A stretch of DNA of 64,000 nt from Histomonas meleagridis 2922-C6/04-290x (GCA_020184695.1 JAANOX010000061.1:310001-374000), one strand, 5' to 3'; shown: positions 1,091 to 30,878, counted from the first letter of the stretch. The notes: generated by a model not told the origin, from the letters alone. Program-made: numbers and translations.

Positions 1091-4000
1091 ATGAGCAATA
1101 AAAAATGGTCACGTACTTTGGAATCACTTGAAAATATCATTTTTGACTTAAATGAAACTAATGTTGATGATAGCGTTGAGGCAACAATAAAACTATTAGG
1201 TGATAATTTTTCGAATTGTTTGAATATGACAATCGTTCGACTGATATATTCATCATTTCTTTCACAAATGAAAGATTTTGATATCTATTTTGATTTCATG
1301 AAGAAACTTGAAATAAAAAAGCGCAACAAAAATAATTCGGAAATAATCAATTCATTTTCAAATTTTCTTCTTGACTTAAAAACACAAGAATCTTATTATC
1401 TTTTAGAAAGATTGATTAATTTAAATGTAATCTCATCAAATTTAATTGATAACACGAAAAATTTGTATTTTGCACATGAAATTCCAAGTGAATCAATAAG
1501 TGCAGTAATGTTCAACAGAATTCGATTTTCTAAATATTTCTCTAAAAACTTTAATGAACTATCGAAGAATGATTGGGAACTTCATAAAAAATATGTTAAA
1601 GAAGGACATAATCCAAGTGAAATTGCGAAAATACTTCGAAATGATGAAATAGAAAAACTTCAAGAAATATCATCACAAAATGATTTTGGTTTTAATCAAA
1701 CAATCAAACCATCACTTTATGAAAGATGTTCATTTGTTAATGATTATCTTTCATTAATTGATTATGCAGCATTTTTTGGATCCATTAAATGTTTTAAATA
1801 TTTACTTATGAACGGCGCAAACATTGAAGATACAGGTAAGTATGCAATTGCAGGAGGAAATCTTGAAATTGTTCATTTATGTGAACAGAATCATTGTTCA
1901 TTTTATTTGGGATATGAAGCTGCTATTAAATATCATCGAAATGATATTTTTTATTATCTTTATGAAAATGAAATTATTGATCATTCCAACAAACAACTTT
2001 TTGAAATTATTTTATCTTCATCAAATGATTTTATAAATATTAAAATACTTAACTTTTTACTTGAAAAAGAAGAACTGAATATTGGATATGTTTAATTATT
2101 TTATTTTATATATATTTTTACGATTTGAAGTTTTAAAATAATATTCGGAATTTATTTAAGTTATTTTTACCATTACTAATATTTGTATACAATAAATGTT
2201 CGACAGAAATAATCCAAATACTGCTTGAACAAGAAGGAATAGATTTTAATGCTACAAATATACATTTTTTTTATATGATATTAATTTCAACTCTTTAAAA
2301 TTTTAAAATAATATTTGGAATTTATATAAAATATTTTATACACCACTTTTATTTGCATCTAAATATGGCCATACTGAAGTTGCTGAATCTCTTCTTGAAA
2401 AAGATGGAATCATTTTCAATAATAAAGATATTGGTTTGAATTATTTTTGTATTTTTGTAATAATGTTTTGATGTTTCAAAGTTAATTTTAGAAATTCTTC
2501 ATAAAATTTCAAACACCACTTATTTTGGCATCTAAAAATGGATATATTGATATAGTTAAGTTACTTCTTGCAAAGGAAGGAATTGATATCAATGCAAAAG
2601 ATATTAATTTGTTTTATTAAGAATTTGTTATATGAATTATTAATTTCAAAATGATATTTGGAATTTATTTAAATTATTTTGTAATGCATTTATGTGGGCA
2701 GCAAAGAATGGTCATATTGACATAGTTAAGATATTTCTTGATCAAGGAATAAATGTTAATATGAAAGATATTTCTTTGCTTTATTATTTGTATATTTTAA
2801 TAATTCTATATTTCAAAATAATTGTTGGAATTTAATCAAAATATTTGAAACAGCTCTAATGAAAACAATTGCAAATGGTTATATAGAAATTGTCAAATTA
2901 TTTTTGAGTCAAAAAGGAACTGATGTTAATGACAGCGATGAAGTTAATATTTAATAATAATGATTGGAAATCCAAAATTTTATTTTATACTTCAATTATT
3001 TGGGCAGTAAACTATAATCACATCGAAATAGTTAAATTACTTCTTGAACAAGAAGAAATTGATATTAATGCTAAAGATATTTATTTGTTTTATTTAATGT
3101 ATATTTTAACAATTTACAATTTAAAAACAATATTTGGAAATTATATAAATTATTTAACACAGCACTTATAATTGCAAGTAAAAAAGGTTATATTGAAATA
3201 GTTAAATTACTTCTTCAACAAGAAGAAATTGATATTAATGCTAAAGATATTTGTTTGTTTTATTTAATGTATATTTTAACAATTTACAATTTAAAAGCAA
3301 TATTTGGAAATTATTTAAATTATATAAAACAGCACTTATGAATTCAATTTATTGTGAACATTTAGAAATAACTAAGTTACTTCTTGAACAAAAAGGATTT
3401 GATATTAATACTAAAGATATTTATTTACTTTATTTATATTTTATATTTATAACTTTCCATTCTAAAATAATATTTGGAAATTGTTCAAATAATTTGAAAC
3501 ATTGCTTACATATGCATCTGTTAAAGGATATACAGAGATAGTTAAACTACTTCTTGAAAAAGATTTAATTGATATCAATGCAAAAAATATTAATTAGTTT
3601 AATTTGAAATTTATTCCAATCTTAGTTTAATGTTTAAAAATAATATTTTCAAATTATTATATTTGTTTAAAACTGCACTTATTTATGCATCTGAAAAAGG
3701 TTATACAGAAATAGTACAATTGCTTCTTTCAAAAGAAAGAGTTGATATTAATGCGAAGGATATTTAATTATTATATTTGAAAATTGTTTCTATAAGTTGA
3801 TGATTCAAAGTCTTATTGAGAAATATTACAAATTATTTAATACAGCACTTATTTGTGCATCTTCAAATGGTCATACAGAAATAGTTAAATTACTTCTTGA
3901 ACAAGAAGGAATTGATATTAATGCTAAAGATATTTATTTGTTATTTTCAATATTTATTTTAATAATTTTATATTTCAAAATAATATTTGGAAATTATTTA

Positions 4001-5080
4001 AATTATTTGAAACATCACTTATTAGAGCATCTCAAAATGGTCATACAGAAATATTTAAATTACTTCTTGAACAAGAAGGTATTGATGTTATTACTAAAGA
4101 TAAAATTTATTTGTTTTATTTAATATTTATTTTTATAATTTGATATTACAAAATAATATTTGGAAATTATTTAAATTATTTTGGACAGTACTTATGAATG
4201 CATCTGATGAAGGTTATACAGAAATGGTTAAATTACTTCTTGAACAAGAAGGAATTGATATTAATGCCAAAAATATTTATTTGTTTTGTTTAAAAATTAT
4301 TTTAATAATTTGATATTTAGAAATAATATTTGGAAATTATTTAAATTATTTGAAACAGCACTTATTTTGGCATCTTATCGTGGTCATACAGAAATAGTTA
4401 AATTACTTCTTGAACAAGAAGGAATTGATATTAATGCTAAAAATATTTATTTGTTTTATTTGATATTTATTTTAATAATTTGGAAATTATTCAAAATATT
4501 TGGAACAGCACTAATGCTGGCATCTAAAATTGGTAATGTAGAAATTACTAAATTACTTCTTAAACATGAAGGGATTAACATTAATGATAAAAATATTTAT
4601 TCGTTTTATTTAAAATTTATTTTGAAAATATAATAATTAATAATTATTTTTGGGAATCATTCAAATTATTTTCTACAGCACTTATGTGCGCAATTCAAAA
4701 TTTCAACACAGAAATTGCCAAATTACTTATTGAACAAAAAGGAATTGATATTAATGCCAAAGATATTAATATATTTTATTTAATATTTGTATACATGTTT
4801 TAAAATTCTTTGATTATATTTGGTATTTCTGTAAAACATACAATACTGCACTTATGGTGGCAGCTAAAAGATGTAATAAAGAAATTATTAAATTGCTTCT
4901 TGAGCAAAAAGGAATTGATACTAATGCTAAAGATATTAATATGTTTTATATAATATTTATTTAAATATTATAAAATTCCTAAAAAATATTTGGTCATTGT
5001 TCAATATATTTAGAACTGCATCTGTGATGCTTTATAGTCGAAATCATGTATTATTTAAACAGGTTTTTGGACGTTTTTAA
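1091..5080 (+). CDS. DUF3447-type ankyrin gene 1: head ORF 1091-2095, then 17 full ankyrin modules and a terminal capping repeat, separated by 18 non-coding spacers
   Basis: Head has the Trichomonas DUF3447-family motif (SLIDYAAFFGSIKCFKYLL..YAIAGGNLEIVHLCEQ..EAAIKYHRNDIF). Modules such as TALICASSNGHTEIVKLLLEQEGIDINAKD start at 2170, 2340, 2513, 2683, 2850, 2989, 3159, 3329, 3499, 3672, 3842, 4012, 4185, 4355, 4505, 4675 and 4845, all stop-free. The terminal repeat at 5015 ends at TAA 5078-5080. A single gene model assumes the spacers are removed. Confidence 0.75.
2090..5014 (+). repeat. ~170-bp periodic array: 90-nt ankyrin module + ~80-nt AT-rich spacer (18 spacers)
   Basis: Counted spacer lengths: 80,80,83,80,80,49,80,80,80,83,80,80,83,80,60,80,80,80. 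Confidence 0.93.
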
Positions 5081-5240
5081 AAGCATCTAATTTTTTATGC
5101 GATATTGTTTATTATACTGTTATTTATTTATAAATAAACTAATGAAAATTTGTATATAAAATTGATTCTATACATTATATTATTATAATATTTTTCACAT
5201 TTCTTGAATAAATATTACCAAAAATTTCTTTTAAATTAAA

Positions 5241-6497
5241 TTAATTTTTATTATTCTTTTTTTCTTTTAATATTTCCACGAATTCTTCGATTGTCTTCTT
5301 TCTATCCATATTAACCAAAGCGTAATCCATTAACGAGAGCAAATTCCTCATTACATCGGAAGATATTCCTGTTAACCTATGAATCAAATGGTTATGCAGC
5401 ACATTCTCATTACCATTATCCACACTATAACTCATTAAAACAATACTCGGCTGTGGCCCGACTGCCTGATGCACATTCAGCATTACATCTTTTATCATTT
5501 CGTTATGGACTTTAAATCTTCCAATGTTCGTTAGATACAATCCAAGTCCGCGCGGCGCTATATTAACAAATCGTTTATCATCAGGATGCAAAAGAGGCAA
5601 CAAAAGATAACGCGTGTGCCCAATAAAAGCTTTAGTTTGAAGTTCATCTTTAAGACATTTATCAAGTGAGTCAATTAACTCACCAATCGTTCGAGGTTTA
5701 GTATCACCACAGTTTATTAATATGTTTCCAGATTGGTACCCGAAGCTAATCGAAGAGCAAAGAGGCTCAGAGAGATATGGACGAGCGTTAATCGCCGCTT
5801 GTAAGCCATAGCCATCATCAGAAAAGCCACTAAACGCTTTCACGGAAAGAACAAAGGACGAAACAAGCATGGCCGTGAGTTGATGGATATGTGAATTGGA
5901 ACGATCATAACCTGGAAGTGTGGAAATGGGTATTGTTGAATAGACATAAGACGTGTCATCACCGTTGTACGATGAATCAGTTCGGAATTGTGTCATCGTG
6001 GAGTGAAAAGGTGATATGAATAAAGGTTCAGAGGATTCGATTTGGCGTTTGAAGGTGGTCTCACCAAAGAGTGAGGGAGGCATTGTAAGGGTTGGGATTG
6101 TAAAGTCGGGCTTTTGGATTTCTTCAACTATTCGTTGCCATTGACCACCATCAGACCAGGCATGATTGGAATTGTAGACAATAAAACGATCATTAGCAGA
6201 AAGGGTGGCAACTTGAGTAGTTTCATTAGGTTTGGCGTTTTCTATTGACCATTGAATTGCTTCTTCGAGTTTTGTAATAGTATTTGGCATAGAGAAAACA
6301 GTGTTATGATGGTGATCTAAATGAACAATTTTATTTTCTACATCAACAGTAATATGAAAAGAAACAGTGATTGCAAAAATACGATTACATATTTCTTCGA
6401 TCTTTGAAGGATCAGAGATTTCAAGCGCAAGTTGAATATAACATGGTGCAACTGTTGAATATGGTGTCTCCATAATACACAGAGGACGTTCTGTCAT
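5241..6497 (-). CDS. Condensation-domain / CoA-dependent acyltransferase-like protein
   Basis: 418-aa ORF with an HxxxDG motif (NHAWSDGG) at the position expected for the CAT-like/condensation fold; less AT-rich than its flanks. Confidence 0.62.
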   Translation of the reverse strand: MTERPLCIMETPYSTVAPCYIQLALEISDPSKIEEICNRIFAITVSFHITVDVENKIVHLDHHHNTVFSMPNTITKLEEAIQWSIENAKPNETTQVATLSANDRFIVYNSNHAWSDGGQWQRIVEEIQKPDFTIPTLTMPPSLFGETTFKRQIESSEPLFISPFHSTMTQFRTDSSYNGDDTSYVYSTIPISTLPGYDRSNSHIHQLTAMLVSSFVLSVKAFSGFSDDGYGLQAAINARPYLSEPLCSSISFGYQSGNILINCGDTKPRTIGELIDSLDKCLKDELQTKAFIGHTRYLLLPLLHPDDKRFVNIAPRGLGLYLTNIGRFKVHNEMIKDVMLNVHQAVGPQPSIVLMSYSVDNGNENVLHNHLIHRLTGISSDVMRNLLSLMDYALVNMDRKKTIEEFVEILKEKKNNKN

Positions 6498-6927
6498 GGT
6501 GGAAAAAGAACGAATTCGACCAGATTTAAATTGAAAAAAATTTGTATAAACAATAAACCTTTCAATAAATAAATACTTTACAGTTAAACAAAAGTGCTTT
6601 TATGCCAGTTTTTTTAGTCAGAAAAAAAAAATAAGCATATAATTTCCCAAAACCTGCTTCATTTATGCAAACATTGAATCTCGTCCATCACTTAAGGATG
6701 GAATTGATATTTTGTGGCATTAAAAGAAGCAAAAAATAAAATTGGAAACGATAGACAAATGATTAAGTACTGAATTAAAATTTGAGAAATAACATTAAAT
6801 AAACAAAATATTACTGAAAAGCATTCATAAAAATCATTGTAATGTTTAAATGAATTTGTTCTAATGATAAAGTGAACAAGTAACGGTCGCCAACAATTGT
6901 CAATGTCTGTTCGTTTAAATCTTCTAA

Positions 6928-8049
6928 ATGTCTAAATCTAAAGCAAAATCAAAGCCAAGCACAGCCGATGATAATGAGCCATATTACCATCCAGTTCTTG
7001 AAGAACAAATGATTATACGTTTTCCAAAGGATATTGCAGCAAGTCTTACTGCACTTATGGAAGATGATGAACCATTTAAAGATTTCACAATAAAATTCGT
7101 AGACGAACACCACGCAGTTGTTAAAATTTTTGACCAAACATTAAAAGCTGTTTTAGTATCACTTCCAACTATTGTTGAAACACACCGAACAGTTGATGGT
7201 TCACATTTATTTAAATCAGCCGACATTGGAGAAATGCTTATAGTTTATCACCCAAATTCAGAACCTGAAGATATTAATGAGGGTTATCTTTACGAACATG
7301 GACTAACACCTCCAACAAAGGACATTGTTTCCAAACGTAAAGCCAAACAAGAGACAGCTCGTGCTAACCAACCCGACAGCAGTTCTCTTGAAGGAATTGA
7401 TTATTGGGAGATGGTTGAAATACAACTTTCTGCCTTATTATCCAAAGACAAAAGCACCAAGCCATATTGCCGACATGAATTTCTTGAAGAACCCGATATA
7501 GATGCCGTTGAACTTGAGAAAATATTACGTCGAGATGGGCATGAAGAATTCAAAGGATATTCAGGCATTGATATTCCTGAAGAAGAAATCCAATCAATAT
7601 CACCCGAGAACGAACCTATAGTCCACATCCCGCAAGAAATCATCGACGAGATTGCGCCGAAAGAAGAAACAGAAGAAGAAACCGAAGCCGAAATAACGAA
7701 AAGTGACGAAGATGAAGTGATCCAAGATCAGCCTAAAACAGAAGCTACATCATCAACAGAGCTTGAGCCACAATCGGAAGTCTCTGAATCTTCATCGTAT
7801 TATGAAGAAGAAGAGGAGGAAGAAGATATTCCCGAAATGAAAACTTATAAAGACCTTTTAAGACAATACGAAGTGATACAAAATGATATAAAGACAATGG
7901 AAAATAACTTGTTTAAGAATAAAGATAACGAGAGAGTGAAAAATATTATCGAAAATTCTCTGGAAGATAAGAAAAGGAAAATGGCTGACATAGAGGCACA
8001 GCTTCATGAAGCGGAAAGAGCTTTAAATGAGAGGAAGAACAAAAATTAG
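6928..8049 (+). CDS. TAF7: TFIID subunit 7 (TAFII55 N-terminal domain, acidic middle, C-terminal coiled coil)
   Basis: LEEQMIIRFP, LVSLPTIVETHRTVDGSHLFKSADIGEMLIV and HGLTPPT match TAF7 conserved blocks. Confidence 0.85.
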   Translation: MSKSKAKSKPSTADDNEPYYHPVLEEQMIIRFPKDIAASLTALMEDDEPFKDFTIKFVDEHHAVVKIFDQTLKAVLVSLPTIVETHRTVDGSHLFKSADIGEMLIVYHPNSEPEDINEGYLYEHGLTPPTKDIVSKRKAKQETARANQPDSSSLEGIDYWEMVEIQLSALLSKDKSTKPYCRHEFLEEPDIDAVELEKILRRDGHEEFKGYSGIDIPEEEIQSISPENEPIVHIPQEIIDEIAPKEETEEETEAEITKSDEDEVIQDQPKTEATSSTELEPQSEVSESSSYYEEEEEEEDIPEMKTYKDLLRQYEVIQNDIKTMENNLFKNKDNERVKNIIENSLEDKKRKMADIEAQLHEAERALNERKNKN

Positions 8050-8266
8050 ATGATAATAAAATATTTTTATATTTATAAAATCCAAAACTTAACAAAAAGA
8101 AACGATCAAAATAATTGAATGATTTACATATAGTTAATAGAAATTTGAAAGAGAATTGTTCGTTTTTTGTTGTTGGTTCAGATCCTCCTAATGAGTTATT
8201 GGAATAAGTTTCTTTTAATAACATGTTTACTATAATTAAAAGAGGGGGAATTTATTCAATCATAAT

Positions 8267-9676
8267 ATGAATAAAATTGAAAAAACTCAAAGCCTTTTTG
8301 TTACATTTTTATTTATTCTCTTTTTTTCGTATTCATTTGAAGCTTATGATCCATCAACTTTTACACTTACTATTTCAAATTATAGTGACTATATTAATAG
8401 AAGTGAGTATAAAACCAATACACAACATCTTATTTTTGATGTTGTTGCATTCAAGGGACTTGATTTCTATGGATGGCCTTCGCTAGTATCTGTTGCAATT
8501 GGTAATTCAGTCACTTCAATTGGGGATTTTATTTATACTCAAATCTTAAAACAGTAACAATTGGAGACAATGTGAAAACACTTGAAAATCTAGTATTTAG
8601 AGGATGTTTTAATTTAACAACATTTAATATTGGTAAAAATCTGGAAGTGATTGGAGATATGGTATTCAGTCAATGTAATTCACTAAAAGAAATTATTATA
8701 CCTAACAAAGTCACTTCATTTGGGGATAGTACATTTTTACAATGTACAAGTTTGAAAACATTAGTCATTGGTAAAAATGTTACAACAATCGGAAATTACG
8801 TATTTCAATTTTGTACGTCATTAACAGAAATTACAATACCAGACTCAGTTACAACAATTGTATCAAACGTTTTCATGGATTTGTACAAATCTTCAATTTA
8901 TTGAAGTATCTGATGGAAACAAATATTTTTCAGGAAGAAACGGAATTTTATCTAGTAAAAATGATACAGAGATTATATGTTATCCAGCTGGAATCTTTAA
9001 TGAAACATTTGCAATACCAAATTCAACTTTAACAATTGGAAATTATTCATTTTATCAGTGCGTTTCATTAATAAGTATTACAATTCCGTATTCGGTCAAT
9101 ACAATCGGAAATAGTGCATTTCAAAACTGTGTCAATCTCAATTGCATTTATTTTACAGGTTATGAATCACCAACTATCGGCAATAATGCATTCGATGGTA
9201 AAATAAAATTCATTATGACATCGGATTTATATAAAAATGAAACATTTGGTACAATTGATGTATCTAAAGAATCTTCAATTGATGAATGCGGTCAATATCC
9301 TTGGGCAACACACACGTTCACAAATAGTTATTCTTTCTTAAATACATTTACTAAATCAAATACATATTCACAAAGTAATTTATTTACTAAATCAAATACA
9401 TTTTCTAATTCGAATACATTTACTGTTTCACTTTTAACTAATTTAACATATGTTAGTACAGTTATTGGATGTTCATTATATATTTCATACCATTTCGGAT
9501 TTTATACAATTTTTTATCAAAACGTTAACGAACAAAATGATAAATTTAATGAAATTATAATTATTGTTATTTGTGTTTGTATTGTAATAATTATTGGTAT
9601 TTTAATTATTGTTACATTAATTCCTTATAAACGTAAGAAAAAGCAAAATAAAATATTTAAATTTCAATTATACTAA
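8267..9676 (+). pseudogene. BspA-like (TpLRR) surface protein split by two frameshifts (~8530, ~8870); pseudogene or assembly error
   Basis: Signal-peptide-like N-terminus; LRR units (LKEIIIPNKVTSFGDSTFLQCTSL); ELICYPAG-like block; SNTFT repeats; C-terminal TM helix followed by KRKKK. Confidence 0.75.
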
Positions 9677-9799
9677 TAATCATTAAAACGAATTTAGTTA
9701 GTGATATTTTTGCAGAACATAAAACGCGATATGTTTATTATTCTTAGTTTGATTTGATATTAAATTAACTTATTTTAATTATCAAGTTTGATTTCGAAT

Positions 9800-9871
9800 T
9801 CCGATATCGTTCATCGGTTAGGATATGTGGTTTTCATCCACGGGAGCGGGGTTCGACTCCCCGTATCGGAA
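9800..9871 (+). tRNA. tRNA-Glu(TTC): tRNA-Glu (anticodon TTC)
   Basis: Acceptor stem TCCGATA/TATCGGA, anticodon arm TGTGG-TT-TTC-AT-CCACG, T-arm GGTTCGACTCC, downstream T-runs. Confidence 0.95.
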
Positions 9872-9989
9872 TAAATTTTTGTTTTTTTTCTTTTTTTCCA
9901 AACATCAGCAAACAAATCACAACTTAAATCTTTGTGTGAGAACAAATACAAATAAATCTGTTAGAATTTACTTATGGAGTGGAACTAAA

Positions 9990-11824: not shown

Positions 11825-13142
11825 TTAGTTGTTAATACTTTTTTGTTTCTTTGCTTCTTTTCCTTTCATCAATAACAAAATCAATGTCAGTAAAGTAACC
11901 AACGAAATGAACACATTTGCAACCTTAAATATTACTATCACGTCAGCATCTTTTAATAACATCAAAATTATCGAAACACATGCAGAAGTTGGTACTCTCA
12001 ATAATCCCAAGATATAACCACGCACATCTTTAGGGTAAGTATTAGCTCGAAGTATACGCATGAAAGTTCCTGCGCCCCCATCACTTATCGCAGCGATTAC
12101 ATAACATGTGAAAACAACATTTTTATTATCGAAAAAAATCACAATTCCATACATACAAAACGTATAAAAAAGATAACAAATAAATAAAACATTTTTCTGT
12201 GAAAAACATGTTTGAAAAAAAGCGCCGAATATCTGTGCTCCATTCATAAGCGCTAAACTACTTGTAGTATTCATTTGTGACAACGGAAGTTTTTCCTTTT
12301 TATCAACTTGATGAATTCGTAACCAACGCGGTGTATATAATAAAACAAATGTATTATAAAGAAAATCAATAAGTAAAAACAAGCGTCAATTCTTTCGATT
12401 GTTGGATATGATGGAAAATAAGTTTAACCGCTTGTAAGTAACTTTGTTTACGTGTTTTGATTTCTTTGTTTTTAGTTTCAGGTAAAAAGAAATAAATTAT
12501 TATCGAAGAAATGAAAAACATTAACGAACTGATGAAAAAGACGCCTGATGTGCCATAATGCTTGGTGATGGATGTGGACATTGGTGTACATAAAAGAGTA
12601 AGAATTAACTTGATTAAAGCCGAGTTTTCTTGAATGGTGATTTGGGAATTTTCGGGTGCTTCCTTGTTTTGGAGTTGTTGAATAAGCCAATCTTCAAAAA
12701 CAACTTTGTTGGATGCAGTCGAAACGCCCATAAGAGCAGAAGCAAAAACAAATTTCCAAAAACCCCCAATGCTTCGAAGCAACGCATGAAAGCCAAGAAA
12801 AATGGCTGAAATTATAATCAGCCTTTTGTGACCAAGAAGCTCAGTGAAATGGCCCACAAGAAATCCCCACATTGATGATATAATATTAAATGTTGACATC
12901 ACAATGCTAATTTGAGAACTCTTGAGACCACAATCTAAGTACCTTTGATATACATATGGACCTTGAAATGTGAGTCCAAGAAGAAAAGAATAGTAACAAA
13001 CAAAATATCTGATCTGGAAATTATTGAGCCATGTTGATTTTTGCCTTTTAGATTTAAACCATTTAACTAACTTGAAAATAACAGCAATCGAGGATGATGT
13101 GAGAAAGGCATAAAACACAACATTTGGGTTCAATGGAATCAT
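11825..13142 (-). CDS. MFS transporter, MFSD5/MOT2 (molybdate-anion transporter)-like; one frameshift near 12375
   Basis: FQGPYVYQRY and KVVFEDWL resemble MFSD5 motifs; RVP near the C-terminus. It has one extra A (GTAAAAAC at ~12375) versus the copy near 32205 (GTAAAAC), which explains the split ORFs. Confidence 0.78.
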
Positions 13143-13269
13143 TTTGAAATTCTCTTCATTTAATTTTCAATTTCTGTTGTTATTTGGTCGATATCACTTC
13201 ACTTTGACCAAACAATTTTGGGGCACCTTATTTTCGATTTTGGGGTACCCTATTTATCGATTTTAACGA

Positions 13270-13882: not shown

Positions 13883-14760
13883 TTAGTTGTTAATACTTTT
13901 TTGTTTCTTTGCTTCTTTTCCTTTCATCAATAACAAAATCAATGTCAGTAAAGTAACCAACGAAATGAACACATTTGCAACCTTAAATATTACTATCACG
14001 TCAGCATCTTTTAATAACATCAAAATTATCGAAACACATGCAGAAGTTGGTACTCTCAATAATCCCAAGATATAACCACGCACATCTTTAGGGTAAGTAT
14101 TAGCTCGAAGTATACGCATGAAAGTTCCTGCGCCCCCATCACTTATCGCAGCGATTACATAACATGTGAAAACAACATTTTTATTATCGAAAAAAATCAC
14201 AATTCCATACATACAAAACGTATAAAAAAGATAACAAATAAATAAAACATTTTTTTCTGTGAAAAACATGTTTTGAAAAAGCGTCCCGAATATCTTTGCT
14301 CCATTCTTAAGCGCTAAACTACTTGTAGTATTCATTTGTGACAACGGAAGTTTTTCCTTTTTATCAACTTGATGAATTCGTAACCAACGCGGTGTTTATT
14401 ATAAAAACAAATGTATTATAAAGAAAAATCAATAAGTAAAACAAGCGTCAGTTCTGTCGATTGTTGGATATGATGGAAAATAAGTTTAACCGCTTGTAAG
14501 TAACTTTGTTTACGTGTTTTGATTTCTTTGTTTTTAGTTTCAGGTAAAAAGAATTAAATTATTAAAAAAAAAAAAAAAAACATACATGTTGGCATCACAA
14601 CGCTAATTTGAGAACTCTTGAAACCAAATCTAAGTATCTTTGATATACATATGAACCTTGAAATGTAAATCCAAGAATAGTAACAAACAAAATGTCGGAT
14701 CTGGAAATTATTGAGCTATGTTGATTTTTGCCTTTTAGATTTAAACCACTTAACTAACTT
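13883..14760 (-). pseudogene. Truncated, internally deleted MFSD5-like copy
   Basis: Same 3' coding region as 11825-12380; ~370-bp internal deletion and loss of the 5' end; several homopolymer indels. Confidence 0.85.
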
Positions 14761-15134: not shown

Positions 15135-15600
15135 ATGACTGAAAGCACACAAACACTTGAATCAGAAAATGAAGCGAATAATACATCAATTAATAACCAA
15201 TCTGTACATATGCAAAATTTGATTTCTTTAGAACAGGTTATATTTAATCTTACAGAAAAAAACCTTGAAATTTCTGTTGCAAAAACAATGAATTTATTTG
15301 ATAAAGATTTTCCTTTTACATTTAATTATTGTATAATTGTTTTAATTTATTCAGCATTTTCATCTCAAAGAGAATCAATCCAAACATATTTCAATTTTTT
15401 CAAGAAATTTAAACACAAGAAGAAGCAATTGTTCACAACAATCCAAAAATTATTGAAATTTTTACTAATTATATATCAGAATTTAATACACAAGAGACAT
15501 ATTATATCATTGAAAAAATGATTGAAAATGAATTAATTAATATAAATATTACCAATAACTTTCATACCAATTATTTTTCACATTATAAAACTGAAGAAGA
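15135..15600 (+). pseudogene. Truncated DUF3447-family ankyrin gene head
   Basis: LEQVIFNLTEKNLEISVAKTMNLFDKDFPFTFNYCIIVLIYSAF aligns with the heads at 29661-30878 and 39769-41079; frameshifted and truncated at 15600. Confidence 0.75.
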
Positions 15601-22467: not shown

Positions 22468-22586
22468 CTTTAAAATATTTTGGGTAATCGTAACTGGCAT
22501 GTTCATACAGAAATACTTAAATTACTTCTTGAACTAGAAGGAATTGATGTTAATGATAAAAATATTTATTTGTTTTATTTAAAATT
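22468..22586 (+). pseudogene. Orphan ankyrin module fragment with the 5' part of a spacer
   Basis: HTEILKLLLELEGIDVNDKN followed by ATTTATTTGTTTTATTTAAAATT, as in array 1 spacers; no head domain nearby. Confidence 0.65.
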
Positions 22587-23033
22587 CTCTAGTTTATTGG
22601 GGCTGGTTTGTTTCCCCAAAATGTTATTTTACAACAATTCAATCCGTTCCTTGTGCTTCAAGTGAAGCTGTACATAAACTGATTCGGTTTTTGATTCCAT
22701 TGAAAATAACCGTATAATTTACCAAATAAGACTATCAATTTTGAAACGAAAACGATCGCAACTATCAATGATGAGGAAGAGCAAGAAAAAAAAATCTGAA
22801 TTCGTTGGCTATCATTTGGAAACAATATATAACTAATTAATTAGCACAACATACACGATTAGATCAGATAAAAAAAATAAATTTTAATTTTCTTTTGCTA
22901 CATTAATTAGCTATATATAGCTAGATGAAGTTCAAAATACCATATATGTTTGAATGCATTCTAATTGTATTAAATTAAAAAATAGAGATGATAATGTGGT
23001 ATATTTTAGGAGTCTAATCATTTTTTTTTTGAT

Positions 23034-23726
23034 GGGGAATCGTTTTTTGCTACAGACAAACCTTGTCAATTTTAGTAGCAAAAAAATTGTGTAAAAAAGG
23101 CGGGGAATTCCCCGGGTTTTTTGGAAATGTGATATAAAAAATTGTTCTGACCATTCATCACAAAGATTGAAGCAACAAATGTTGAATACCCCGGGGTGTT
23201 ATATATTTTCGTTTTTAGTCTCAACTTTCAGTGCAGCTCATTAAATCATTTGGTCTCTCTCATTTGTGATTTAGTACACCTAATTTATTAATATATATTT
23301 TATCATTTTATCCATCACATTTAGGCTTTCAATATACAAATATAGTTTCGTATCTCATTTAATCATTGCTATCTCATTTAATCATTTTTTGCATTTTTGT
23401 CTATTTTGTTTAATTTTTTAGTATTTTAAAAAAGTTTTTGTGTTTTTGAATCTTTAGTTATATGTTTGTGGTTTAACTTTCTAGGTTTATTTTTTCAGTT
23501 TTTGAATATAAATCCGATGATTTTTCATTCATTTGATTCTATCGTTGGAAATCTGCATCCAGTTTATTAAAAATATCCTTAAGCTTCTCATATCATAATT
23601 TTTCATCATAATCCGATGTTTTGCTCCATCTATTTTTTATCTAACTGTAATTACAGCAAAATGACATCAAATTTTTTTTTGCTACGAAAATTGACAAGGT
23701 TTGTCTGTAGCAAAAAACGATTGCCC
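23034..23726. mobile_element. 693-bp MITE-like non-autonomous DNA element with ~53-bp terminal inverted repeats
   Basis: 23034-23086 (GGGGAATCGTTTTTTGCTACAGACAAACCTTGTCAATTTTAGTAGCAAAAAAA) is the reverse complement of 23674-23726 with 2 mismatches; GAT on both flanks (possible 3-bp TSD); no substantial internal ORF. Confidence 0.8.
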
Positions 23727-23947
23727 GATTTATTCAATACCTTTATGGGATTTGCTAGGTTATTTTATTGATTTTTATTTTAAAATATTTTATTTCAAGA
23801 AAAATAAAGGTGGATCCACCTTGGATATATTAATTCTTTTATTTATAATTTTTTATCTGAATAATTTTTTTTACTTAAAGGCTTTAAAAGAAGATAAAAA
23901 TATTTAAATAGTTTATTCTTGTTAACGTTTTCAAGGCAACAAAGGGG

Positions 23948-24544
23948 ATGGAAAACCCTTTTCACTTTGGACTCAAAGTTGCAGTAATTGGTCAATCCGT
24001 CGAGCTTGTTCGTAAGTTTGTTGAATCCGTTCCTGGAGTTGAGATGGATCCATCTGAAACATTCCATTTTCTTAAAGTTTTTACATTTCCTCTATACATT
24101 TCAGATAGTATTATTCTTCGTATCGACTTGTGGGCTCTCCCAGAAGATGTAAAACAAAAAGGTGATGCTCAACTTCTTTGTTGTGATGCTTCTATTGTTT
24201 TTTATATTGCTTCAACAGAAAGTGATATGCTTTCACTTCTTTCAGTTTTCCATCGTGATGTAAGGGCAGCAAATAGTCAGTGTCTTTATATTTGTTGTGG
24301 AAATCTTTCAGAAGGTTCATTAAATGCTTTAGGAAAAGCAAGCGGATTTGAGGTTCAAAAGGTTGAAAACATGGATCCCGAAAACATTGCACATGTGTTT
24401 AAATCGGCTATTGTCTCAATTATAAATCAAATTCCAAATCCACCAGATCCTGTTTTTTTCTTACACAAAAACATAAAACTTGGTTCACTACTTATACAAG
24501 ATCCTTTATATCTCAAATCACTACGACCCAATTTTCCTCAATAA
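23948..24544 (+). CDS. Hypothetical protein with degenerate small-GTPase-like fold
   Basis: LKVAVIG..., LRIDLWALPED, DASIVFYI follow the Ras-fold strand order, but GKT/DxxG/NKxD are lost. Confidence 0.45.
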   Translation: MENPFHFGLKVAVIGQSVELVRKFVESVPGVEMDPSETFHFLKVFTFPLYISDSIILRIDLWALPEDVKQKGDAQLLCCDASIVFYIASTESDMLSLLSVFHRDVRAANSQCLYICCGNLSEGSLNALGKASGFEVQKVENMDPENIAHVFKSAIVSIINQIPNPPDPVFFLHKNIKLGSLLIQDPLYLKSLRPNFPQ

Positions 24545-24976
24545 ACATGTTAAATTCCAAATTTACATATGTAAATTTCTTTTTCTTTAAGCTTAAGATT
24601 TTTCTAAGATCCTTCGCCACATGATCGTGAATAATAGCATACTTCAAAAAAATTTTGCATTATTTTAAGAATATAAGAATGTACATCAAAACATTAAAGA
24701 GATTTACTTTTACTTCACGGACATTAGGCTTTGCATACTGTTTGTGACCTTCTCAATTTAAGATATTTTATTTAAACTTAGTGTTAATCGCAATTTGCAA
24801 TAATTTCCTACATAAAATCGTACGACATAACTTTTTAAATGCTGATAATAAACTATAGAATACATGATAAAGCATCGAAAACACATGACAGTTTTTGATC
24901 GGTATATATTGAAAAAGAGAACAATAATTATTAAAAAGTCATTTTAATGACCAACTCAGAAATATTTTGGAAAAAT

Positions 24977-27900
24977 TCATAACCACTTTTTCAATATACT
25001 AGTGATTATTGAAGTCACAGTTCGAGAACTGGATACATTATGAGAATTAATCAATGAGACAATTTCATCATATCCTTTTTGTGAAGCATACATAAGTGCT
25101 GTCATAAATAATTTCTGTAATTTCCATATATTATTTTAGAATCATAAAAAACAAAAAATTACATCAAATGAAATAAACAAATATTTGTAGCATTGATATC
25201 AATTCCTTCCTTTTGAAGAATTAATGTTACGATATTTGTATAACCATAATTAGCTGCCATTATAAGAGCTGTATAAAATAATGTTTATAATTTCCAAATA
25301 TTATTGTGAAATACCAAATTATTTTATGTAATTATATATAAAATAAATTAATTGATTTAGCATTAATATTAATTCTTTTATGATTAATAAGTAATTCAGC
25401 AATATCTAGATGACGATTCTCAAGTGCTAAGAAAAGCGCAGATTTAAATAATGTAAACAACCTCTAAATAATCATTTAAAACCCTAAATAATTGGAAAAA
25501 AATTTAAATAAAATAAATTAACATTTTCAACATTGACATCAATTCCTTCTTTTTGAAGAAGTAATTCAACAATTTTTGTATGACCTTGAAATGCTGCAAA
25601 AGTAAGTGCCGAATTACGAAATTTAAATTATTTCCAAATTTTTGTATGAAATTCCATATTTTAATGACAAATGTTATATAAAATAAAAAAACTGCTGTAG
25701 CATTAAAGTCAATTCCGTCTTGAGTAAGAAGTAATTCAACAATTTGAGTGTTACCATTCCAAGATGCTGACATAAGTGCAGTTCCAAATAATTTGAATAA
25801 TTTCCAAATATTATTTTGGAATATAAAATTATTAAAATAAATAATAAATAAAATAAATAAATATCATTAGCATTAATATCAATTCCTTTTTGTTCAAGAA
25901 GTATTTGAACTATTTCTGTATGACCATTTTCTGATGCATACATAAGTGCTGTATAAAATAATTTAAATAATTTCCAAATATTATTTTGAAGTTTTGTATG
26001 ACTAAAATATATATCAAATGAAGTGTATAAATATTTTGTGCATTAATGTCAATTCCTTCTTGTTCAAGAAGTAATTTGACTATTTCTATATGACCATTTT
26101 TAGATGCAAGCATAAGTGCTGTCCAAAATATTTTGAATAATTTCCAAATATTATTTTGAATTTTCAAATTATTGAGAAAAGTTTCATATATAAAAAATAT
26201 GTGTTTTTAGCATTGATATTAATATTATCATGATTGAGAATTCTTTTAACAAGTTCAAAAATTCCATCTCGAGATGCATTAAAAAGCATTTTATTATTCG
26301 CATATATTATTTTGATACTTCAAAATAATGAATTAAGTTTCGAATTAAACAAGATAACATTTTCATCAATAATTTCAATGCCTTCTTGTGTAGAGAATAA
26401 ATTTGTAATTTTTGTATGTCTTCTATTAGATGCCCACGTAAGTGCTGTAAAGTATGGTTTGAATAATCTCCAAATATTATTTTGAAATATTAAATTATTA
26501 AAATAAATATTGAAAATAACAAATAAACATCTTTAGCATTAATATCAATTCCTTCTTGCTCAAGAAGTAATTGAACTATTTCTGTATGACCTTTTTCAGA
26601 TGCTAAAATAAGTGCTGTTTTAAATAATTTGAATAATTTCCAAATTTTATTTTGAAACATCAAATTATTAAAATAAATATTAAAAATAACAAATAAACAT
26701 CTTTAACATTAATATCAATTCCTTCTTGTTCAAGAAGTAATTGAACTATTTCTGTCTGACCTTTTTCAGATGCTAAAATAAGTGCTGTTTTAAATATTTT
26801 AAATAATTTCCAAATATTATTTTGAAACATCAAATTATTAAAATAAATATTAAAAATAACAAATAAACATCTTTAACATTAATATCAATTCCTTCTTGTT
26901 CAAGAAGTAATTGAACTATTTCTGTCTGACCTTTTTCAGATGCTAAAATAAGTGCTGTTTTAAATATTTTAAATAATTTCCAAATATTATTTAGAAATTT
27001 TAAATTATTAAAATAAATTTTAAACAAAATAAATAAACATCTTTAACATTAATATCAATTCCTTCTTGTTCAAGAAGTAATTTAGCTATTTCTGTACGAC
27101 CATTTTGGGATTCATGCATAAGTGCTGTTTGGAATAATTCAAATAACTTCCAAATATTTTTTTGAATTATTAAAATATTAAAACATATTTTAAATGAAAC
27201 GAATAAACATCTTTAACATTAATATCATTTTCTTCTTGTTCAAGGAGTAATTTAACTATTTCTGTATGACCATTTTTAGATGCTAACATAAGTGCTGTCC
27301 AAAATATTTTCAATAATTTCCAAATATTATTTTGAATTATTTAATTACACAAACAAACATCAAATAAAATAAGTAAAAATCTTTAGCATTGATATTAATT
27401 CTTTCTTGTTCAAGGAGCAATTTGACGATTTTAATATGATCATTTTTTGATGCAATTATTAACGCTGTTTGGAACAATATAAATAATTTCCAAATATTAT
27501 TTTGAAACATAAAATTATTAAAATAAATATTAAATAAAACAAATAAATATTTTCAGCATTAACATCAATTCTTTCTTGTTCAAGAAGTAATTTAACTATT
27601 TCTGTATGACCATTTGAAGATGCAATTATAAGTGCTGTTTTAAATATTTTAAATAATTTCCAAATATTATTTTGAAATATCAAATTTTTAAAATAAATGA
27701 AAAACAAAATAATAAAATATCAAGTTCATCAACATTAGTTCTTTCATCTTCAAGAAGTAATTTAACGATTTCAAAATTGCCATTCCGAGCCGCATAAAAC
27801 AATAATGTTCGAATTAACAAAAATATTTTCCAAATATTTTATTATATGATAAAATTATTAAAATATATGTTAAATAAAATTAATTAACATTCTCCATATC

Positions 27901-30878
27901 AACATCAATTCCTTTTTGCTCAAAAAGTAATTTAAAGATATCCACAAAGCCATTTTTAGCTGCAAACATAATTGCTGTTTCTAATAATTTGATCAATTTC
28001 CAAATATTATTTTGAAATATCAAATTATTAAAATAAATTTTGTTTTTAGTATTAATATCAATTCCTTCTTGCTCAATAAGTAAATTGATTGTTTCAAAAT
28101 AACCATTTTTAGTTGCCATTATCAGTGCTGTTTCTAATAATTTGATTAATTTCCAAATATTATTTTGAAATATCAAATTATTAAAATAAATTTTGTTTTT
28201 AGCATTAATATAAATTCCTTCTTGCTCAAGAAGTAATTTAACTGTTTCTGTATGACCACGATAAGATGCTTCAATAAGTGCTGTATAAAATAATTTAAAT
28301 AATTTCCAAATATTATTTCTAAATATCAAATTATTAAAATAAATTTTGTTTTTAGCATTAATATCAATTCCTTCTTGCTCAAGAAGTAATTTAACTGTTT
28401 CTGTATGACCACGATAAGATGCTAAAATAAGTGCTGTATAAAATAATTTAAATAATTTCCAAATATTATTTCTAAATATCAAATTATTAAAATAAATATT
28501 ATCTTTAGCATTTATATCAATTCCTTCTTTCTCAAGAATTAATTCAACTAATTGTTTATTATTATATTCAGATGCAATCATTAAAATTGTTCGAAATAAC
28601 TTGATTAATTTCCAATAATTATTAAAAAATACTATAATATTCAAATAAATTTTAGGAAAAACAACAAAACACTTTTGGTATTAATATCGATTCCTTCTTG
28701 TTTAATAAGCAACTTCACTATTTCAAAATTATAATTTTCATATGCAATAAAAAGAGCTGTTATAAATTAATATAATATTTTCCTTAAACTATGTTGGAAT
28801 ACGAAATTAATAAAATTAACTTTGAATTAATTGAAATAATATTTTTAGTATTGATATCAATACCTTCTTGTTCAAGAAGTAATTTTACTATTTCTGTATG
28901 ACCATTATAAGATGCATCTATTAATGCTGTATTAAATAATTTGTATAATTTCCAAATATTATCATATTACATAAAATTATTGAAAAATGCATCAGAACAA
29001 GAAAATAAATATTTTTAAAATTGATATCAATTCCGTCTTGCTCAAGAAGTAATTTCGCTATTTCAGTGCAACCATTTTCAGCTGCTAAAATTAGAGGTGT
29101 TCTAAATATTCCAAATAATTTTTATATATTTTAATGAAATAGTAAATAATAATAAGAAATACGGAATTTTATGCATAAATAGTTTGAATATTAATATCAA
29201 CTCCATCTTGTTCAAGAAAGAATGAGGCGATTTCAGCATTATTATTTCGACATGCATATAAAAATGATATTTCATATATTTTTATTGATTTCCAAATATT
29301 ATTTTGAAATAGAAAATCGTTAAGATAAATATAAAATAAAATTAATATATATCTTTAGCATTAATATCAATTCCTTTTTGTTCAAAAAGTAATTTAAATA
29401 TTTCTATATCACCTCTTGAAGATGCAATCATAAGTGCTGTTTTAAATAATTGAAATAATTACCAAATATTATTTTGAAACTGAAAATCGTTAAGATAAAT
29501 ATAAAATAAAATTAATATATATCTTTAGCATTAATATCAATTCCTTTTTGTTCAAGAAGTAATTTAACTACTTCATATGTACTATTTTTAACTGCATACA
29601 TAAGTATTGTTTCAAATAATTTAAAATTTCTCCGAAAATAAAAGCAAAACTTTAAAGTATTTAAAGAAAATTTAAATAATTTAAAATTATATCACTGTTA
29701 TTGATGTTAAATATTTTTTGTTCTAATATATATTTAACAAGTTCATGATTCCCTGATTCGATAGCTTTTAATAAAATATCATTTGGCATTTGATTATTTT
29801 CAAGAAAATATTTAACGAGATATAAATTCCCATCTTTTGCTGCTTGATTAATAATAATTTCATTGGCTTTTAATCCTTCTTTTTCTAGAAATGAAAATAT
29901 TTCAAAGTTTCCATTGTTAATACATAAAATTCCTAAATTATTGAGATCTTTAGTATTTTCATCTGATTTGTTTTCATAAATGTATTTAAATGCATCATTT
30001 CTATGAAATTCTATTGCTGCTTCAAATACACCTTCAAAGGGAATATTACTTTGTTCACATAAATGAATTATTTCCACATTTCCACCTGCAATTGCATGCT
30101 TCATTGTATGCGTCAAATCAGCATTATTCATAAGCAAAAATCTAAAACATTTAATAGCTCCAAAAAATGCTGCGTAATCAATAATGGTAACATCATGTTT
30201 ATTAAGAAATGAGCAGGTTTCATAAATTGAAGGTTTAATTATTTTATTAAAATTGAAATTTGCTTCTGATGTTATTTCCTGAAGTTTTTCATTATCATCA
30301 TTTCGAATTATTTTTGCAATTGCATCTGGATTATGTCCTTCTTCTATTAACCGCTTGTGAAGTTCCCAATCATTTCTTTTGATTTCATCAAAATTTTCAC
30401 TGAAAGAAAATTGGTCATTGAAACGATTGCGTTCATAATAATGTAAAAAATATCTCGTGGGAATATTCTTAATAACATTTTTATCGACCATATTTTGTTG
30501 AATCATTTTCTCTATGATATAATATGATTCGTATGTTTTAATTTTTAATATGTATCTTAGAAAATTTGTTATAACACTCGGATTATTGATATCAATTTCT
30601 TCTTCTTTTATTTGAATTAAATTTAAATAATTTAAATATATTTCAATCTTGTTTTTTTGTGAATGAAACGCAGAAAAAATAAATTTGCTTATGATTAAAT
30701 TAAATGAATTTGGGAAAAGTTCATCAAATATTTCCATTGTTTTTACAACAGAAAAATCAAGGTTATCATTCTTTAAATTAAATATGATTTCTTTAAGTGA
30801 GGCAAAGACCTTAACATTATCAAGGCAACCCTCAAATTCAATTTTTCCACTATCATCCATTTTTAAAAAAAATGTCAA
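24977..30878 (-). CDS. DUF3447-type ankyrin gene 2: head ORF 30878-29661, then 27 full modules and a terminal repeat, separated by 28 spacers
   Basis: Head with IDYAAFFGAIKCFRFLL/HAIAGGNVEIIHLCEQ. Modules start at 29610, 29440, 29270, 29100 ... 25272, all stop-free. Terminal repeat TALMYASQKGYDEIVSLI starts at 25102 and ends at TGA 24979-24977. Confidence 0.75.
25103..29690 (-). repeat. Periodic ankyrin module/spacer array (28 spacers)
   Basis: 23 spacers of exactly 80 nt, four of 63 nt (28500-27979) and one of 66 nt (26358-26293). Near-identical recent tandem copies at 26529-27038 and 28195-28437. Confidence 0.93.

Follow-up and report, generated by a model that had tools for sequence, protein, structure and literature searches.

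Introduction

Parabasalids are textbook intron-poor eukaryotes. The minimal introns of Stentor and Bigelowiella keep GT-AG ends and have ordinary exons, not single codons, between them. In animals and plants, micro-exons down to 3 nt are spliced in; they are isolated, flanked by long canonical introns and dependent on enhancers. Short AT-rich frame-breakers without intron signals are also known, namely the internal eliminated sequences of ciliates, which leave the DNA, and bypass elements (T4 gene 60, yeast mitochondrial byps), which remain in the mRNA. Splicing of the tRNA and HAC1 type cuts and rejoins other substrates without a spliceosome.

The 63 confirmed introns of Trichomonas vaginalis are all GT/AG, and trichomonad introns, of 23-28 or 56-196 nt, combine an extended 5' motif with an ACTAA/TCTAA branch site that is joined directly to the 3' AG (PMC12316389). 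The short, T-rich type B introns of T. vaginalis and T. stableri have a near-fixed length of 23-28 nt; they reside in nuclear protein-coding genes, including repeat-protein genes, are removed from RNA, always have GT/AG ends with a (T)CTAA branch fused to the 3' end, and occur once per gene or at most twice (PMC12316389). The same paper cites minimal spliceosomal introns of 15 nt in Stentor coeruleus and of 18 nt and up in Bigelowiella natans. For Histomonas meleagridis, the genome paper gave ~600 introns, at most one per gene (PMC8529796). A wholesale departure from GT-AG is known from the tunicate non-canonical introns (PMC13326754) and from the nonconventional introns of Euglena, which require base-paired CAG/CTG near the ends, show a measured spacing to the cut site, prefer a purine at the exon start and are removed by unknown machinery (PMC12501133).

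Here we describe two H. meleagridis genes found in a window of 64,000 nt (the whole stretch of DNA that was analysed). In our reading, with a probability of about 0.85, these are two expressed DUF3447-ankyrin genes in which the beta-hairpin loop of each repeat is split by 17-nt pieces that are removed from RNA. The pieces resemble type B introns in phylum, in being very short, T-rich and constant in length, in residing in nuclear genes for repeat proteins and in being removed from RNA; unlike type B introns, they measure 17 nt, have neither GT-AG nor CTAAC and stand in tandem, up to 107 per gene. Their length range and narrow distribution are comparable to those of the Stentor and Bigelowiella introns, which show that a spliceosome can handle introns of ~15-20 nt. 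The departure from GT-AG is shared with Euglena and tunicates, although the introns of neither have a fixed 17-nt length or one-codon exons, and the Histomonas pieces have neither the paired CAG/CTG of Euglena nor any conserved pairing. Unlike the micro-exons of animals and plants, the 128 one-codon exons of the two genes stand three or four in a row, separated by 17-nt pieces. Unlike internal eliminated sequences and bypass elements, the pieces are kept in DNA and are absent from RNA contigs.

Layout of the two genes

The initial annotation had described two arrays with 44 full ankyrin modules, all stop-free, each array ending in a cap with a stop, and 46 junctions interrupted at one site. 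Our parse agrees, with every interruption preceded by the D/N codon of ...INAKD and followed by the T codon of TAL. By Pfam, five modules matched Ank with 2.7e-36 (PF00023/PF12796), and both genes code for ankyrin-repeat proteins with a DUF3447 head (PF11929), the match of head 1 (3.5e-05) being under the curated cut-off.

Gene 1 (1091..5080, plus strand) consists of a DUF3447/Ank head, 17 full modules and a cap. The head exon (1091..2089, plus strand) has 333 codons, and RNA contigs depart from the genome precisely past 2089. A free dynamic-programming parse, with its intron and exon-length lists, placed 69 micro-introns in this gene, each 17 nt long, together with 49 exons of one codon; it was also used for the cap, where the anchored parse deletes too much. 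Once the 69 pieces are deleted, the frame is stop-free from the ATG at 1091 to the TAA at 5078-5080, and the predicted mature protein has 938 aa.

Gene 2 (24977..30860, minus strand) has a DUF3447/Ank head (30860-29691; Ank_2 at 1.9e-11, DUF3447 at 1.1e-08), 27 full modules and a cap. Several weak 17-mers were mis-parsed in a free parse of this array with one general weight matrix. The module-anchored parse that replaced it, together with an intron list and a parse of the head junction, produced 107 micro-introns, again of 17 nt each, and 79 exons of one codon. Deletion of the 107 pieces leaves no internal stop, and the predicted mature protein of ~1354 aa ends at the TGA 24979-24977. With the pieces removed, each array forms a single uninterrupted ORF downstream of its head, which speaks against the earlier suggestion that the arrays are cassette libraries.

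The distance from the D codon to the T codon is 80 nt at 32 between-module junctions, at both head junctions and at the cap junction of array 1. The remaining distances are 83, 77, 66, 63 (four times), 60 or 49 nt, and all 46 spacer lengths fit 17a + 3b. A spacer is a row of AU-rich 17-nt pieces, usually four, each followed by one kept codon. All 32 of the 80-nt between-module spacers parse as (17+3) x 4, with no stop among their 128 single codons and with GGN as the third codon in 29 spacers. Jointly, the kept codons restore the missing ankyrin hairpin D-x-x-G-x-T. For example, the typical 80-nt spacer at 3932..4011 (plus strand; 17-mers 3932-3948, 3952-3968, 3972-3988 and 3992-4008) has the codons AAT, TAT, GGA and GAA, which yield the loop D-N-Y-G-E-T; RNA loose ends at 3932 go on as A-A-TAT-GGA-GAA-ACA in the consensus of paralogous contigs.

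Natural variants lack exactly one 17-mer at spacer lengths of 63 and 66 nt, one 17+3 unit at 60 nt and two 17-mers at 49 nt, where the border 2948 is visible in RNA. The 60-nt spacer at 4445..4504 (plus strand) is shorter than the 80-nt form by one 20-nt unit (17-mer and codon), so that three 17-mers and as many codons are left, and the 66-nt spacer at 26293..26358 (minus strand) holds three 17-mers and five codons, the fourth 17-mer being missing. Within 27979..28500 (minus strand), four successive 63-nt spacers (28500-28438, 28347-28285, 28194-28132 and 28041-27979) each lack precisely the first 17-mer. This part of array 2 shows a 153-nt period, and a spurious 254-aa ORF (27880-28644) runs through the four spacers because 3 x 17 = 51 preserves the frame.

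The 176 pieces (69 + 107) always lie between codons, and the single-codon exons number 49 and 79 in the two genes. The pieces have the consensus R-W-T-T-N9-A-T-T-T with A+T of ~92%; their length is fixed at 17 nt, and their interiors vary. An A at position 14 is common to 147 pieces, and the base that follows the piece is a purine in 138.

Evidence from RNA and DNA contigs

The RNA evidence consists of assembled contigs (not reads) of three public runs, X4, X5 and X6, and the listed RNA pieces cover 6 of the 46 junctions directly. RNA contigs of 736-793 nt match 1866/1940-2948 in six pieces. The losses at the first six junctions of array 1 were exactly 68, 68, 68, 68, 68 and 34 nt, 68 being 4 x 17. 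A model of 22 excised 17-mers gives all 12 piece coordinates and the only mismatch, and its length from 1940 to 3049, 736 nt, is that of the RNA contig. The recorded RNA spacings of 102, 105, 102 and 99 nt correspond to 34, 35, 34 and 33 codons, so that the frame is kept. The share of 31-mers found in the RNA runs was close to that of exons only (0.37-0.50 and 0.30-0.35 compared to the expected 0.43 and 0.32). The earlier proposal that the spacers are removed and that the genes are real is supported, with RNA contigs that lack the spacers, stay in frame and have repeats of 33-35 codons.

Individual junctions (all on the plus strand) fit as follows. At junction 1 (2090..2166), the 17-mers 2090-2106, 2110-2126, 2130-2146 and 2150-2166 leave the codons TAT, GAA and GGA; of the 77 nt passed over by the RNA contigs, 9 letters are retained and 68 nt lost, and the model matches the recorded coordinates. 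Junction 2 (2260..2336; 17-mers 2260-2276, 2280-2296, 2300-2316 and 2320-2336; codons GAT, AAA and GGA) also loses 68 nt, with its left piece end recorded at 2258, one base short of the model maximum of 2259. Junction 3 (2430..2509), in an 83-nt spacer, keeps five codons; its 17-mers are 2430-2446 and 2453-2469, which are less securely placed, and 2473-2489 and 2493-2509, and in RNA 68 nt are lost with 12 letters kept between pieces. At junction 4 (2603..2679; 17-mers 2603-2619, 2623-2639, 2643-2659 and 2663-2679; codons AGA, TTA and GGA), the RNA piece end at 2603 and the 8 inter-piece letters agree with the parse to the base. Junction 5 (2770..2846; 17-mers 2770-2786, 2790-2806, 2810-2826 and 2830-2846; codons TTT, TAT and GGA) loses 68 nt, and the lone mismatch, in the RNA piece 2680-2773, is predicted by the parse (TTTT laid on ATTT). 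Junction 6 (2949..2985), in a 49-nt spacer, has just two 17-mers, 2949-2965 and 2969-2985, with GGA between them; the usual first two are missing, the RNA piece ends at 2948, and 34 nt are lost.

The identity of the kept codons rests on the counts, the piece ends, the one mismatch, the ankyrin consensus and the natural variants; a blind enumeration of every four-17-mer deletion was too permissive to fix the kept letters. Presence in DNA with precise absence from mature RNA, a feature of U2-type spliceosomal introns, was observed for 22 pieces at six junctions. Beyond this, we infer the exact inner placement of every 17-mer, excision at the 154 remaining sites and the nature of the machinery.

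The initial annotation assumed one intron-like spacer per junction and predicted joins of the form D-I-F-x-T or D-I-L-F-x-T. A total of 68 nt does not by itself give the number of cuts, and one could think of a single cut of a ~70-80-nt spacer or of two 34-nt introns flanking one micro-exon. We consider either version highly improbable. The RNA loses exactly 4 x 17 nt and keeps inner single codons, with 5-12 letters that fit neither flank, which excludes one cut and refutes both predicted joins. A central micro-exon would not bring back the glycine; moreover, the size steps between variants are exactly 17 or 20 nt, at outer as well as inner units, and the 17-mer that begins at the RNA border 2948/2949 has GGA directly behind it. 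A reading with a single GGA micro-exon flanked by two introns was dropped on the grounds of 68 = 4 x 17, the 17/20-nt variants and the fit of piece ends. The earlier limit on retained sequence (at most 5 nt on the 5' side and 8 nt on the 3' side) is valid only for excision in one piece, as the kept codons sit inside the spacer. The last two codons had been taken as coding; the final one is indeed kept, but the TTT before it belongs to the fourth 17-mer, whose 3' end (ATTT) is conserved.

Decayed repeats or pseudogenes, with spliced-looking contigs derived from intact paralogues, from assembly or from template switching by reverse transcriptase, would fit the many paralogues and the multi-mapping of much of the window RNA. 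The dN/dS among modules, 0.68-0.74, is also just moderately below 1, a value that is not decisive for repeats of one protein compared with each other. We give this explanation very little weight, as the contigs matching 1866/1940-2948 come from three independent runs, with a single mismatch, which the model explains, and one simple rule with 176 excisions produces two stop-free ORFs (938 and ~1354 aa). Furthermore, 63 of the 176 pieces have no border repeat able to support template switching, and within the modules conservation is highest at codon position 2.

The RNA contigs by themselves do not separate RNA processing from transcription of joined DNA, which could arise by excision of the pieces in some cells or copies, or as a retrocopy without introns. 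However, DNA contigs (run X1, word depth ~550-680) are unbroken over 2089/2090, 2166/2167, 2259/2260, 2336/2337, 2429/2430 and 2509/2510. They end only within conserved inserts and show no branching at exon/insert borders, while a joined copy of similar abundance would split the assembly graph. Because the DNA contigs cross these borders intact, removal is placed at the RNA level, not in DNA excision or cassettes, and the programmed DNA excision considered earlier finds no support in the same organism's DNA. Unspliced RNA contigs were present too (X6 4261-4349, X4 4908-5040); therefore, removal is incomplete or some pre-mRNA is present. Coming from the same locus, these contigs suggest a precursor, and a different DNA template appears most unlikely.

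Comparison with known intron classes

The 176 pieces were compared with the defining features of described classes. As noted in the initial annotation, the GT-AG and ACTAAC signals are lacking: whatever equivalent register is chosen, GT..AG fits 0/176 pieces, and neither array contains ACTAAC. With respect to U2-type introns, with GT (or GC)/AG ends, we found a GT start in 28/176 and an AG end in 1/176. For the trichomonad types A and B, CTAAC and ACTAA were each found in 0/176 and CTAA in 4/176, at a length of 17 nt. The U12-type (AT-AC) 5' motif ATATCC occurred in 0/176 and its 3' AC in 3/176. Euglenid nonconventional features were lacking as well, with CAG in 1/176, CTG in 1/176, G+C of 8.4% and no pair in RNAalifold. 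No consensus structure of the tRNA/archaeal bulge-helix-bulge or Ire1 type was observed in 32 aligned spacers, and a candidate 7-bp hairpin had 0 compensatory changes and was no better than in shuffles. Ciliate-like DNA elimination disagrees with the bulk DNA contigs, which keep every piece (a rare rearranged subpopulation aside), and translational bypass disagrees with RNA contigs that have no pieces, though some unspliced contigs exist.

The two window genes would add 176 intervening sequences that fail every defining test of known intron classes. If confirmed, they would set a new lower bound for what can serve as an exon and as an intron, as well as offer a compact 17-nt substrate for studying the choice of cut sites without GU/AG.

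Occurrence in other genomes

The same layout was observed on an NCBI H. meleagridis contig and on an independent ENA metagenome contig; for a paralogue on the NCBI contig, the recorded gene calls span the head only. In a public protein collection, a search with the C-terminus of the head had no match and a search with head 2 found paralogues only; the organism's own DNA and RNA sequencing runs appear to be absent from this collection. With no public protein matching either head and with head-only calls in the paralogue, an entire gene family escapes current annotation pipelines. In other parabasalids, the picture was mixed. A Tritrichomonas foetus homologue showed no interruption, nor did a Logan contig with 40% GC; in another Logan contig, with 25% GC, the same loop is broken up, but by long, irregular spacers whose lengths are no multiples of 17. 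Searches of the literature for 17-nt introns, micro-introns, Histomonas introns and ankyrin genes, and parabasalid non-canonical introns found no description of such pieces, nor a precedent for rows of one-codon exons.

Possible machinery

In the mechanism that we propose, the 17-nt pieces would be transcribed and then taken out of the RNA, and their removal would rebuild D-x-x-G-x-T and a continuous ankyrin solenoid. As a working guess, at slightly less than even odds, the remover would be a highly divergent spliceosomal reaction. The pieces would then descend from short T-rich type B trichomonad introns reduced to a minimal fixed length, with the shared A at position 14 as a putative branch point. 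Counted against this version are GT..AG in none of the 176 pieces, a GT start in only 28, the lack of CTAAC and the 3-nt exons.

Processing without a spliceosome, with an endonuclease/ligase pair or an RNA-guided activity that would read the RTTT...ATTT ends, measure 17 nt and rejoin the codons, is rather unlikely taken alone; such a cut-and-ligate activity is nearly as likely as the spliceosomal version. We know of no enzyme for such AU-only sites, and no bulge-helix-bulge or conserved pairing was found (RNAalifold 0 pairs; the candidate hairpin had no compensatory change). On the other hand, constant length with variable interiors and the complete absence of GT-AG and branch motifs would suit a measuring enzyme, 3-nt exons are hard to square with exon definition or with two adjacent spliceosomes, and a purine follows the piece in 138/176. 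A precedent exists in the nonconventional introns of Euglena, which lack GT-AG ends, have a ruler-like spacing and favour a purine as the first exon base (PMC12501133).

Common to the spliceosomal and the spliceosome-free versions is a more general possibility, which we put forward tentatively. Histomonas may have an RNA excision-ligation activity without GU-AG recognition, in the form of either a novel enzyme system or a spliceosome that has been radically re-tooled. Such an activity would measure off 17 nt from a RUUU to an AUUU end and join single-codon exons, with hundreds of events per transcript. So far, this activity was seen only in ankyrin loops, and it may also act off target. In one RNA contig (X4 record 10), 17 letters are missing at some point within 1866-2089, part of the gene 1 head exon, and this gap would disrupt the ORF. 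Judged by sequence, the gap would lie at 1892..1908 (plus strand), the best-scoring 17-mer in 1866-1939, which starts in phase 0 and has ATTT as its last four letters, with G as the next base.

Gene layout and spacer lengths

The window (28% G+C), which also holds intron-less housekeeping genes, e.g., Sec61 alpha, and BspA-type LRR genes (Pfam), has two genes whose heads gave DUF3447/ankyrin matches: gene 1 (head at 1091-2089, plus strand) and gene 2 (head at 30860-29691, minus strand). Behind each head lies a tandem array whose dominant period is 170 nt. A scan with the 30-residue module consensus as query found 17 full modules and a cap in array 1, as well as 27 full modules and a cap in array 2, every module being stop-free. 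The 44 modules and 46 junctions of the initial annotation were thus reproduced.

We measured the spacer at each junction from the D/N codon ending a module to the T codon of the next module. The spacer was 80 nt long at 32 between-module junctions, at the two junctions that follow the heads and at the one before the array-1 cap. The remaining spacers were 83, 77, 66, 63 (four consecutive), 60 or 49 nt long. All these lengths fit 17a + 3b.

RNA and DNA contigs across array 1

The share of sampled words of array 1 was 0.82 in DNA runs and 0.37-0.50 in RNA runs of the same organism. Contigs of three RNA runs (X4, X5, X6) and of one DNA run (X1) were aligned to positions 1000-5300 of the window. 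The RNA contigs (736 nt, one each in X5 and X6, and 793 nt in X4) matched the window in six segments: 1866/1940-2089, 2167-2258, 2337-2429, 2510-2603, 2680-2773 and 2847-2948. The segment starts on the RNA-contig record were spaced by 102, 105, 102 and 99 nt, i.e., by 34, 35, 34 and 33 whole codons, which keeps the RNA in frame. Letters matching neither flank stand between the segments (9, 10, 12, 8 and 5, in order), and the net loss relative to the genome is therefore exactly 68 nt at every one of these five junctions. One cut per spacer, the model proposed in the initial annotation, would leave no such extra letters.

The X1 contigs, on the other hand, are colinear with the window and cross the borders between exons and inserts, with breaks only inside the inserts, where the sequence recurs between units. 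Since the X1 contigs keep the AT-rich 17-nt pieces of the spacers and the RNA contigs are without them, the pieces are present in DNA and missing from RNA. These observations show that the pieces are lost at the RNA level, in multiples of 17 nt, and that the reading frame is thereby restored. Three other readings, namely excision from DNA as the source of the joined RNA, spliced-looking RNA arising from paralogues or from assembly errors, and bypass of the pieces by the ribosome, are each poorly compatible with the two sets of contigs.

We also observed RNA contigs that retained a spacer, at 4261-4349 (X6 record 19) and at 4908-5040 (X4 record 12, spanning the last junction before the cap). 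Their depth was similar to that of the spliced contigs, while no RNA depth was present in the downstream intergenic region 5176-5300, which favours retained introns or pre-mRNA over DNA carry-over as their source.

The 17-nt pieces and the single codons

All 32 of the 80-nt between-module spacers parse, in a single register, as four repeats of 17 nt plus one codon, with no stops among the 128 single codons. The third loop codon was GGA, GGT or GGG in 29 of the 32 spacers. The four loop codons resemble ankyrin hairpins (NYGE, KDGE, NDGK, etc.) and complete the D-x-x-G-x-T pattern. In the other 19 registers of the same spacers, stops made up ~7% of the codons, and GGN codons were very few overall. 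The initial idea, a single GGA micro-exon between two introns, was replaced by this layout.

The ends of the RNA-contig segments agree with the parse to the base, save at junction 2. For junction 1 the parse predicts the nine intervening letters to be TAT-GAA-GGA. At junction 4 the left segment runs a single base past the exon, into the first 17-mer, since the retained codon that comes next (AGA) begins with the same A; eight letters then follow. At junction 5 the single 'other letter' within the segment 2680-2773 is expected from TTT-T placed on ATT-T. The last segment stops at 2948, the start of a 17-mer that is followed by GGA. The retained codons are inferred to be the predicted single codons from the letter counts, the segment ends, the one 'other letter', the ankyrin consensus and the natural variants. 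The mature RNA simulated for 1940-3049 (3049 is also the end of a DNA contig) was 736 nt long, the same as the RNA contigs. This 22-intron model fits the RNA-contig coordinates base-exactly, with ten in retained sequence and with 2603 and 2773 as chance extensions; the sole deviation is the segment end at junction 2, reported at 2258 and modelled at 2259.

Whole genes were parsed by dynamic programming, with either a sense codon read or 17 nt, scored by a weight matrix, skipped at each step. Starting from the ATG at 1091, the parse made 69 skips and produced a 938-aa protein with regular ankyrin repeats, ending at the TAA at 5078. For array 2, a module-anchored parse made 107 skips and yielded 1360 stop-free codons ending at the TGA at 24979-24977, with a predicted gene 2 protein of about 1354 aa from the first ATG. 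The two genes combined have 128 one-codon exons. The share of sampled words of array 2 was 0.30-0.35 in RNA runs compared to 0.76-0.82 in DNA runs, with 0.32 (0.39 x 0.82) expected from exons alone; for array 1 the exon-only expectation was 0.43 against the 0.37-0.50 observed. These shares indicate, weakly but consistently, that expressed array 2 RNA likewise lacks the pieces.

The shorter and longer spacers are natural variants of the unit. Exactly the first 17-mer is absent from the four 63-nt spacers, and a spurious 254-aa ORF crosses them because 3 x 17 = 51 preserves the frame. The fourth 17-mer is absent from the 66-nt spacer, one 17-mer with its codon from the 60-nt spacer, and the first two 17-mers from the 49-nt spacer, whose border is visible in RNA; the 83-nt spacers have one additional codon. 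Such precise loss of single pieces argues that each 17-mer is a separate unit, and would be the outcome expected of reverse-transcript-mediated intron loss.

A 17-letter gap was also seen in the head exon, somewhere in 1866-2089 (X4 RNA contig record 10). The best candidate is 1892-1908, which starts at a codon boundary (phase 0) and ends in ATTT, followed by G. The X5 and X6 contigs begin at 1940, 31 nt after 1909, which would fit a branch of the assembly graph there. Since removal of 1892-1908 would create a premature stop, the gap may be an off-target excision.

Sequence signals and possible mechanism

The 176 pieces have a G+C content of 8.4%. Common to all four loop positions are a purine at base 1 (169 pieces of 176), TT at bases 3-4 (131), A at base 14 (147), TTT at bases 15-17 (131) and a purine directly after the piece (138). 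The pieces start with AT (90), AA (41) or GT (28), and 137 end in TT. Among the 63 pieces with borders unable to slide, most have an AT or AA start and a TT end. None of the 176 has the GT..AG form in any equivalent register, and CTAAC, ACTAA and ATATCC are absent from them. RNAalifold predicted no pair in the 32 aligned spacers, and no compensatory change was seen in a candidate hairpin of 7 bp that surrounds the GGA codon.

Between units, the 17-mers and the third codon positions were about equally conserved (0.72 each). Conservation was lower at loop codons 1, 2 and 4 (0.38-0.52) and high at the glycine codon (0.86). Inside the modules codon position 2 was the most conserved (0.84), and dN/dS in comparison among modules was 0.68-0.74.

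As a first guess, the pieces would be removed by a divergent spliceosomal reaction, with the shared A at position 14 as a possible branch point, because trichomonads have short T-rich introns of fixed length (23-28 nt) and introns of 15-18 nt are spliced in other organisms (PMC12316389). Against this reading, the pieces fail every sequence criterion of spliceosomal introns, and we found no precedent for rows of 3-nt exons. Removal by a ruler-type endonuclease and ligase, or by some other activity, is almost as likely as a divergent spliceosomal reaction. Introns are reported to be scarce in the H. meleagridis genome, with one per gene at most (PMC8529796), and our literature search found no description of the 17-nt micro-intron layout.

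Distribution in relatives

The NCBI proteins of Histomonas meleagridis include a paralogous head, and the array behind it shows the same 17-mers; recorded gene calls there are limited to the head and leave the array uncalled. On an NCBI H. meleagridis contig (L002, about 7300-9300; WSYJ01000186.1), a mariner-like transposase ORF separates the head of a paralogous gene from its ankyrin array, and here too the recorded calls end with the head. The (17+3) x 4 layout also follows the first repeats of an independent ENA metagenome contig whose head is 50% identical. In a public protein collection no protein matched either head of the window. No interruptions are present in a T. foetus homologue or in a 40%-GC relative.

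In another AT-rich relative (L005, 1900-3000; Logan SRR34776232, 25% G+C), whose head is 32% identical, spacers interrupt ankyrin repeats at the same position in the loop. These spacers, of 169 nt and about 300 nt, are long, follow no regular length and do not add up from 17-mers and four codons; further along, two ankyrin repeats follow each other without a break.

Other features of the window

A third DUF3447-type head, a truncated N-terminal fragment of 128 aa (15135-15521, plus strand), is probably a gene remnant, because no ankyrin array follows it and it contains no 17-mers whose removal would restore it. A multi-pass membrane-protein gene is present in three copies or partial copies on the minus strand (11825-13142, 13883-14344 and 31660-32367). 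Compared with the copy at 31660-32367, the first of these has a frameshift that divides it into two overlapping ORFs, which could reflect either an assembly error or a segmental duplication that left a pseudogene.

The G+C-rich motif GGTGCCCCAA occurs seven times in the window at ≤1 mismatch compared to 0.6 expected: at 1000-1009 on the plus strand and at 13218-13227, 13240-13249, 36950-36959, 38209-38218, 38317-38326 and 55229-55238 on the minus strand. Two start codons, at 1091 (plus) and 13142 (minus), have the motif about 80-100 nt upstream in the same orientation, making it a candidate promoter element.

Rfam gave just two matches in the window, tRNA-Glu(TTC) at 9799-9872 (plus strand) and tRNA-Lys(TTT) at 51457-51529 (minus strand). 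A 35-nt tandem repeat (10 copies, 97% matches) is located at 38532-38887. A BspA-type LRR gene at 8267-9676 (plus strand) is fragmented into three ORFs; the 18/36-nt repeat of this gene, at 9340-9424, appears again at 58695-58828, which suggests a second member of the family near 58.7 kb.
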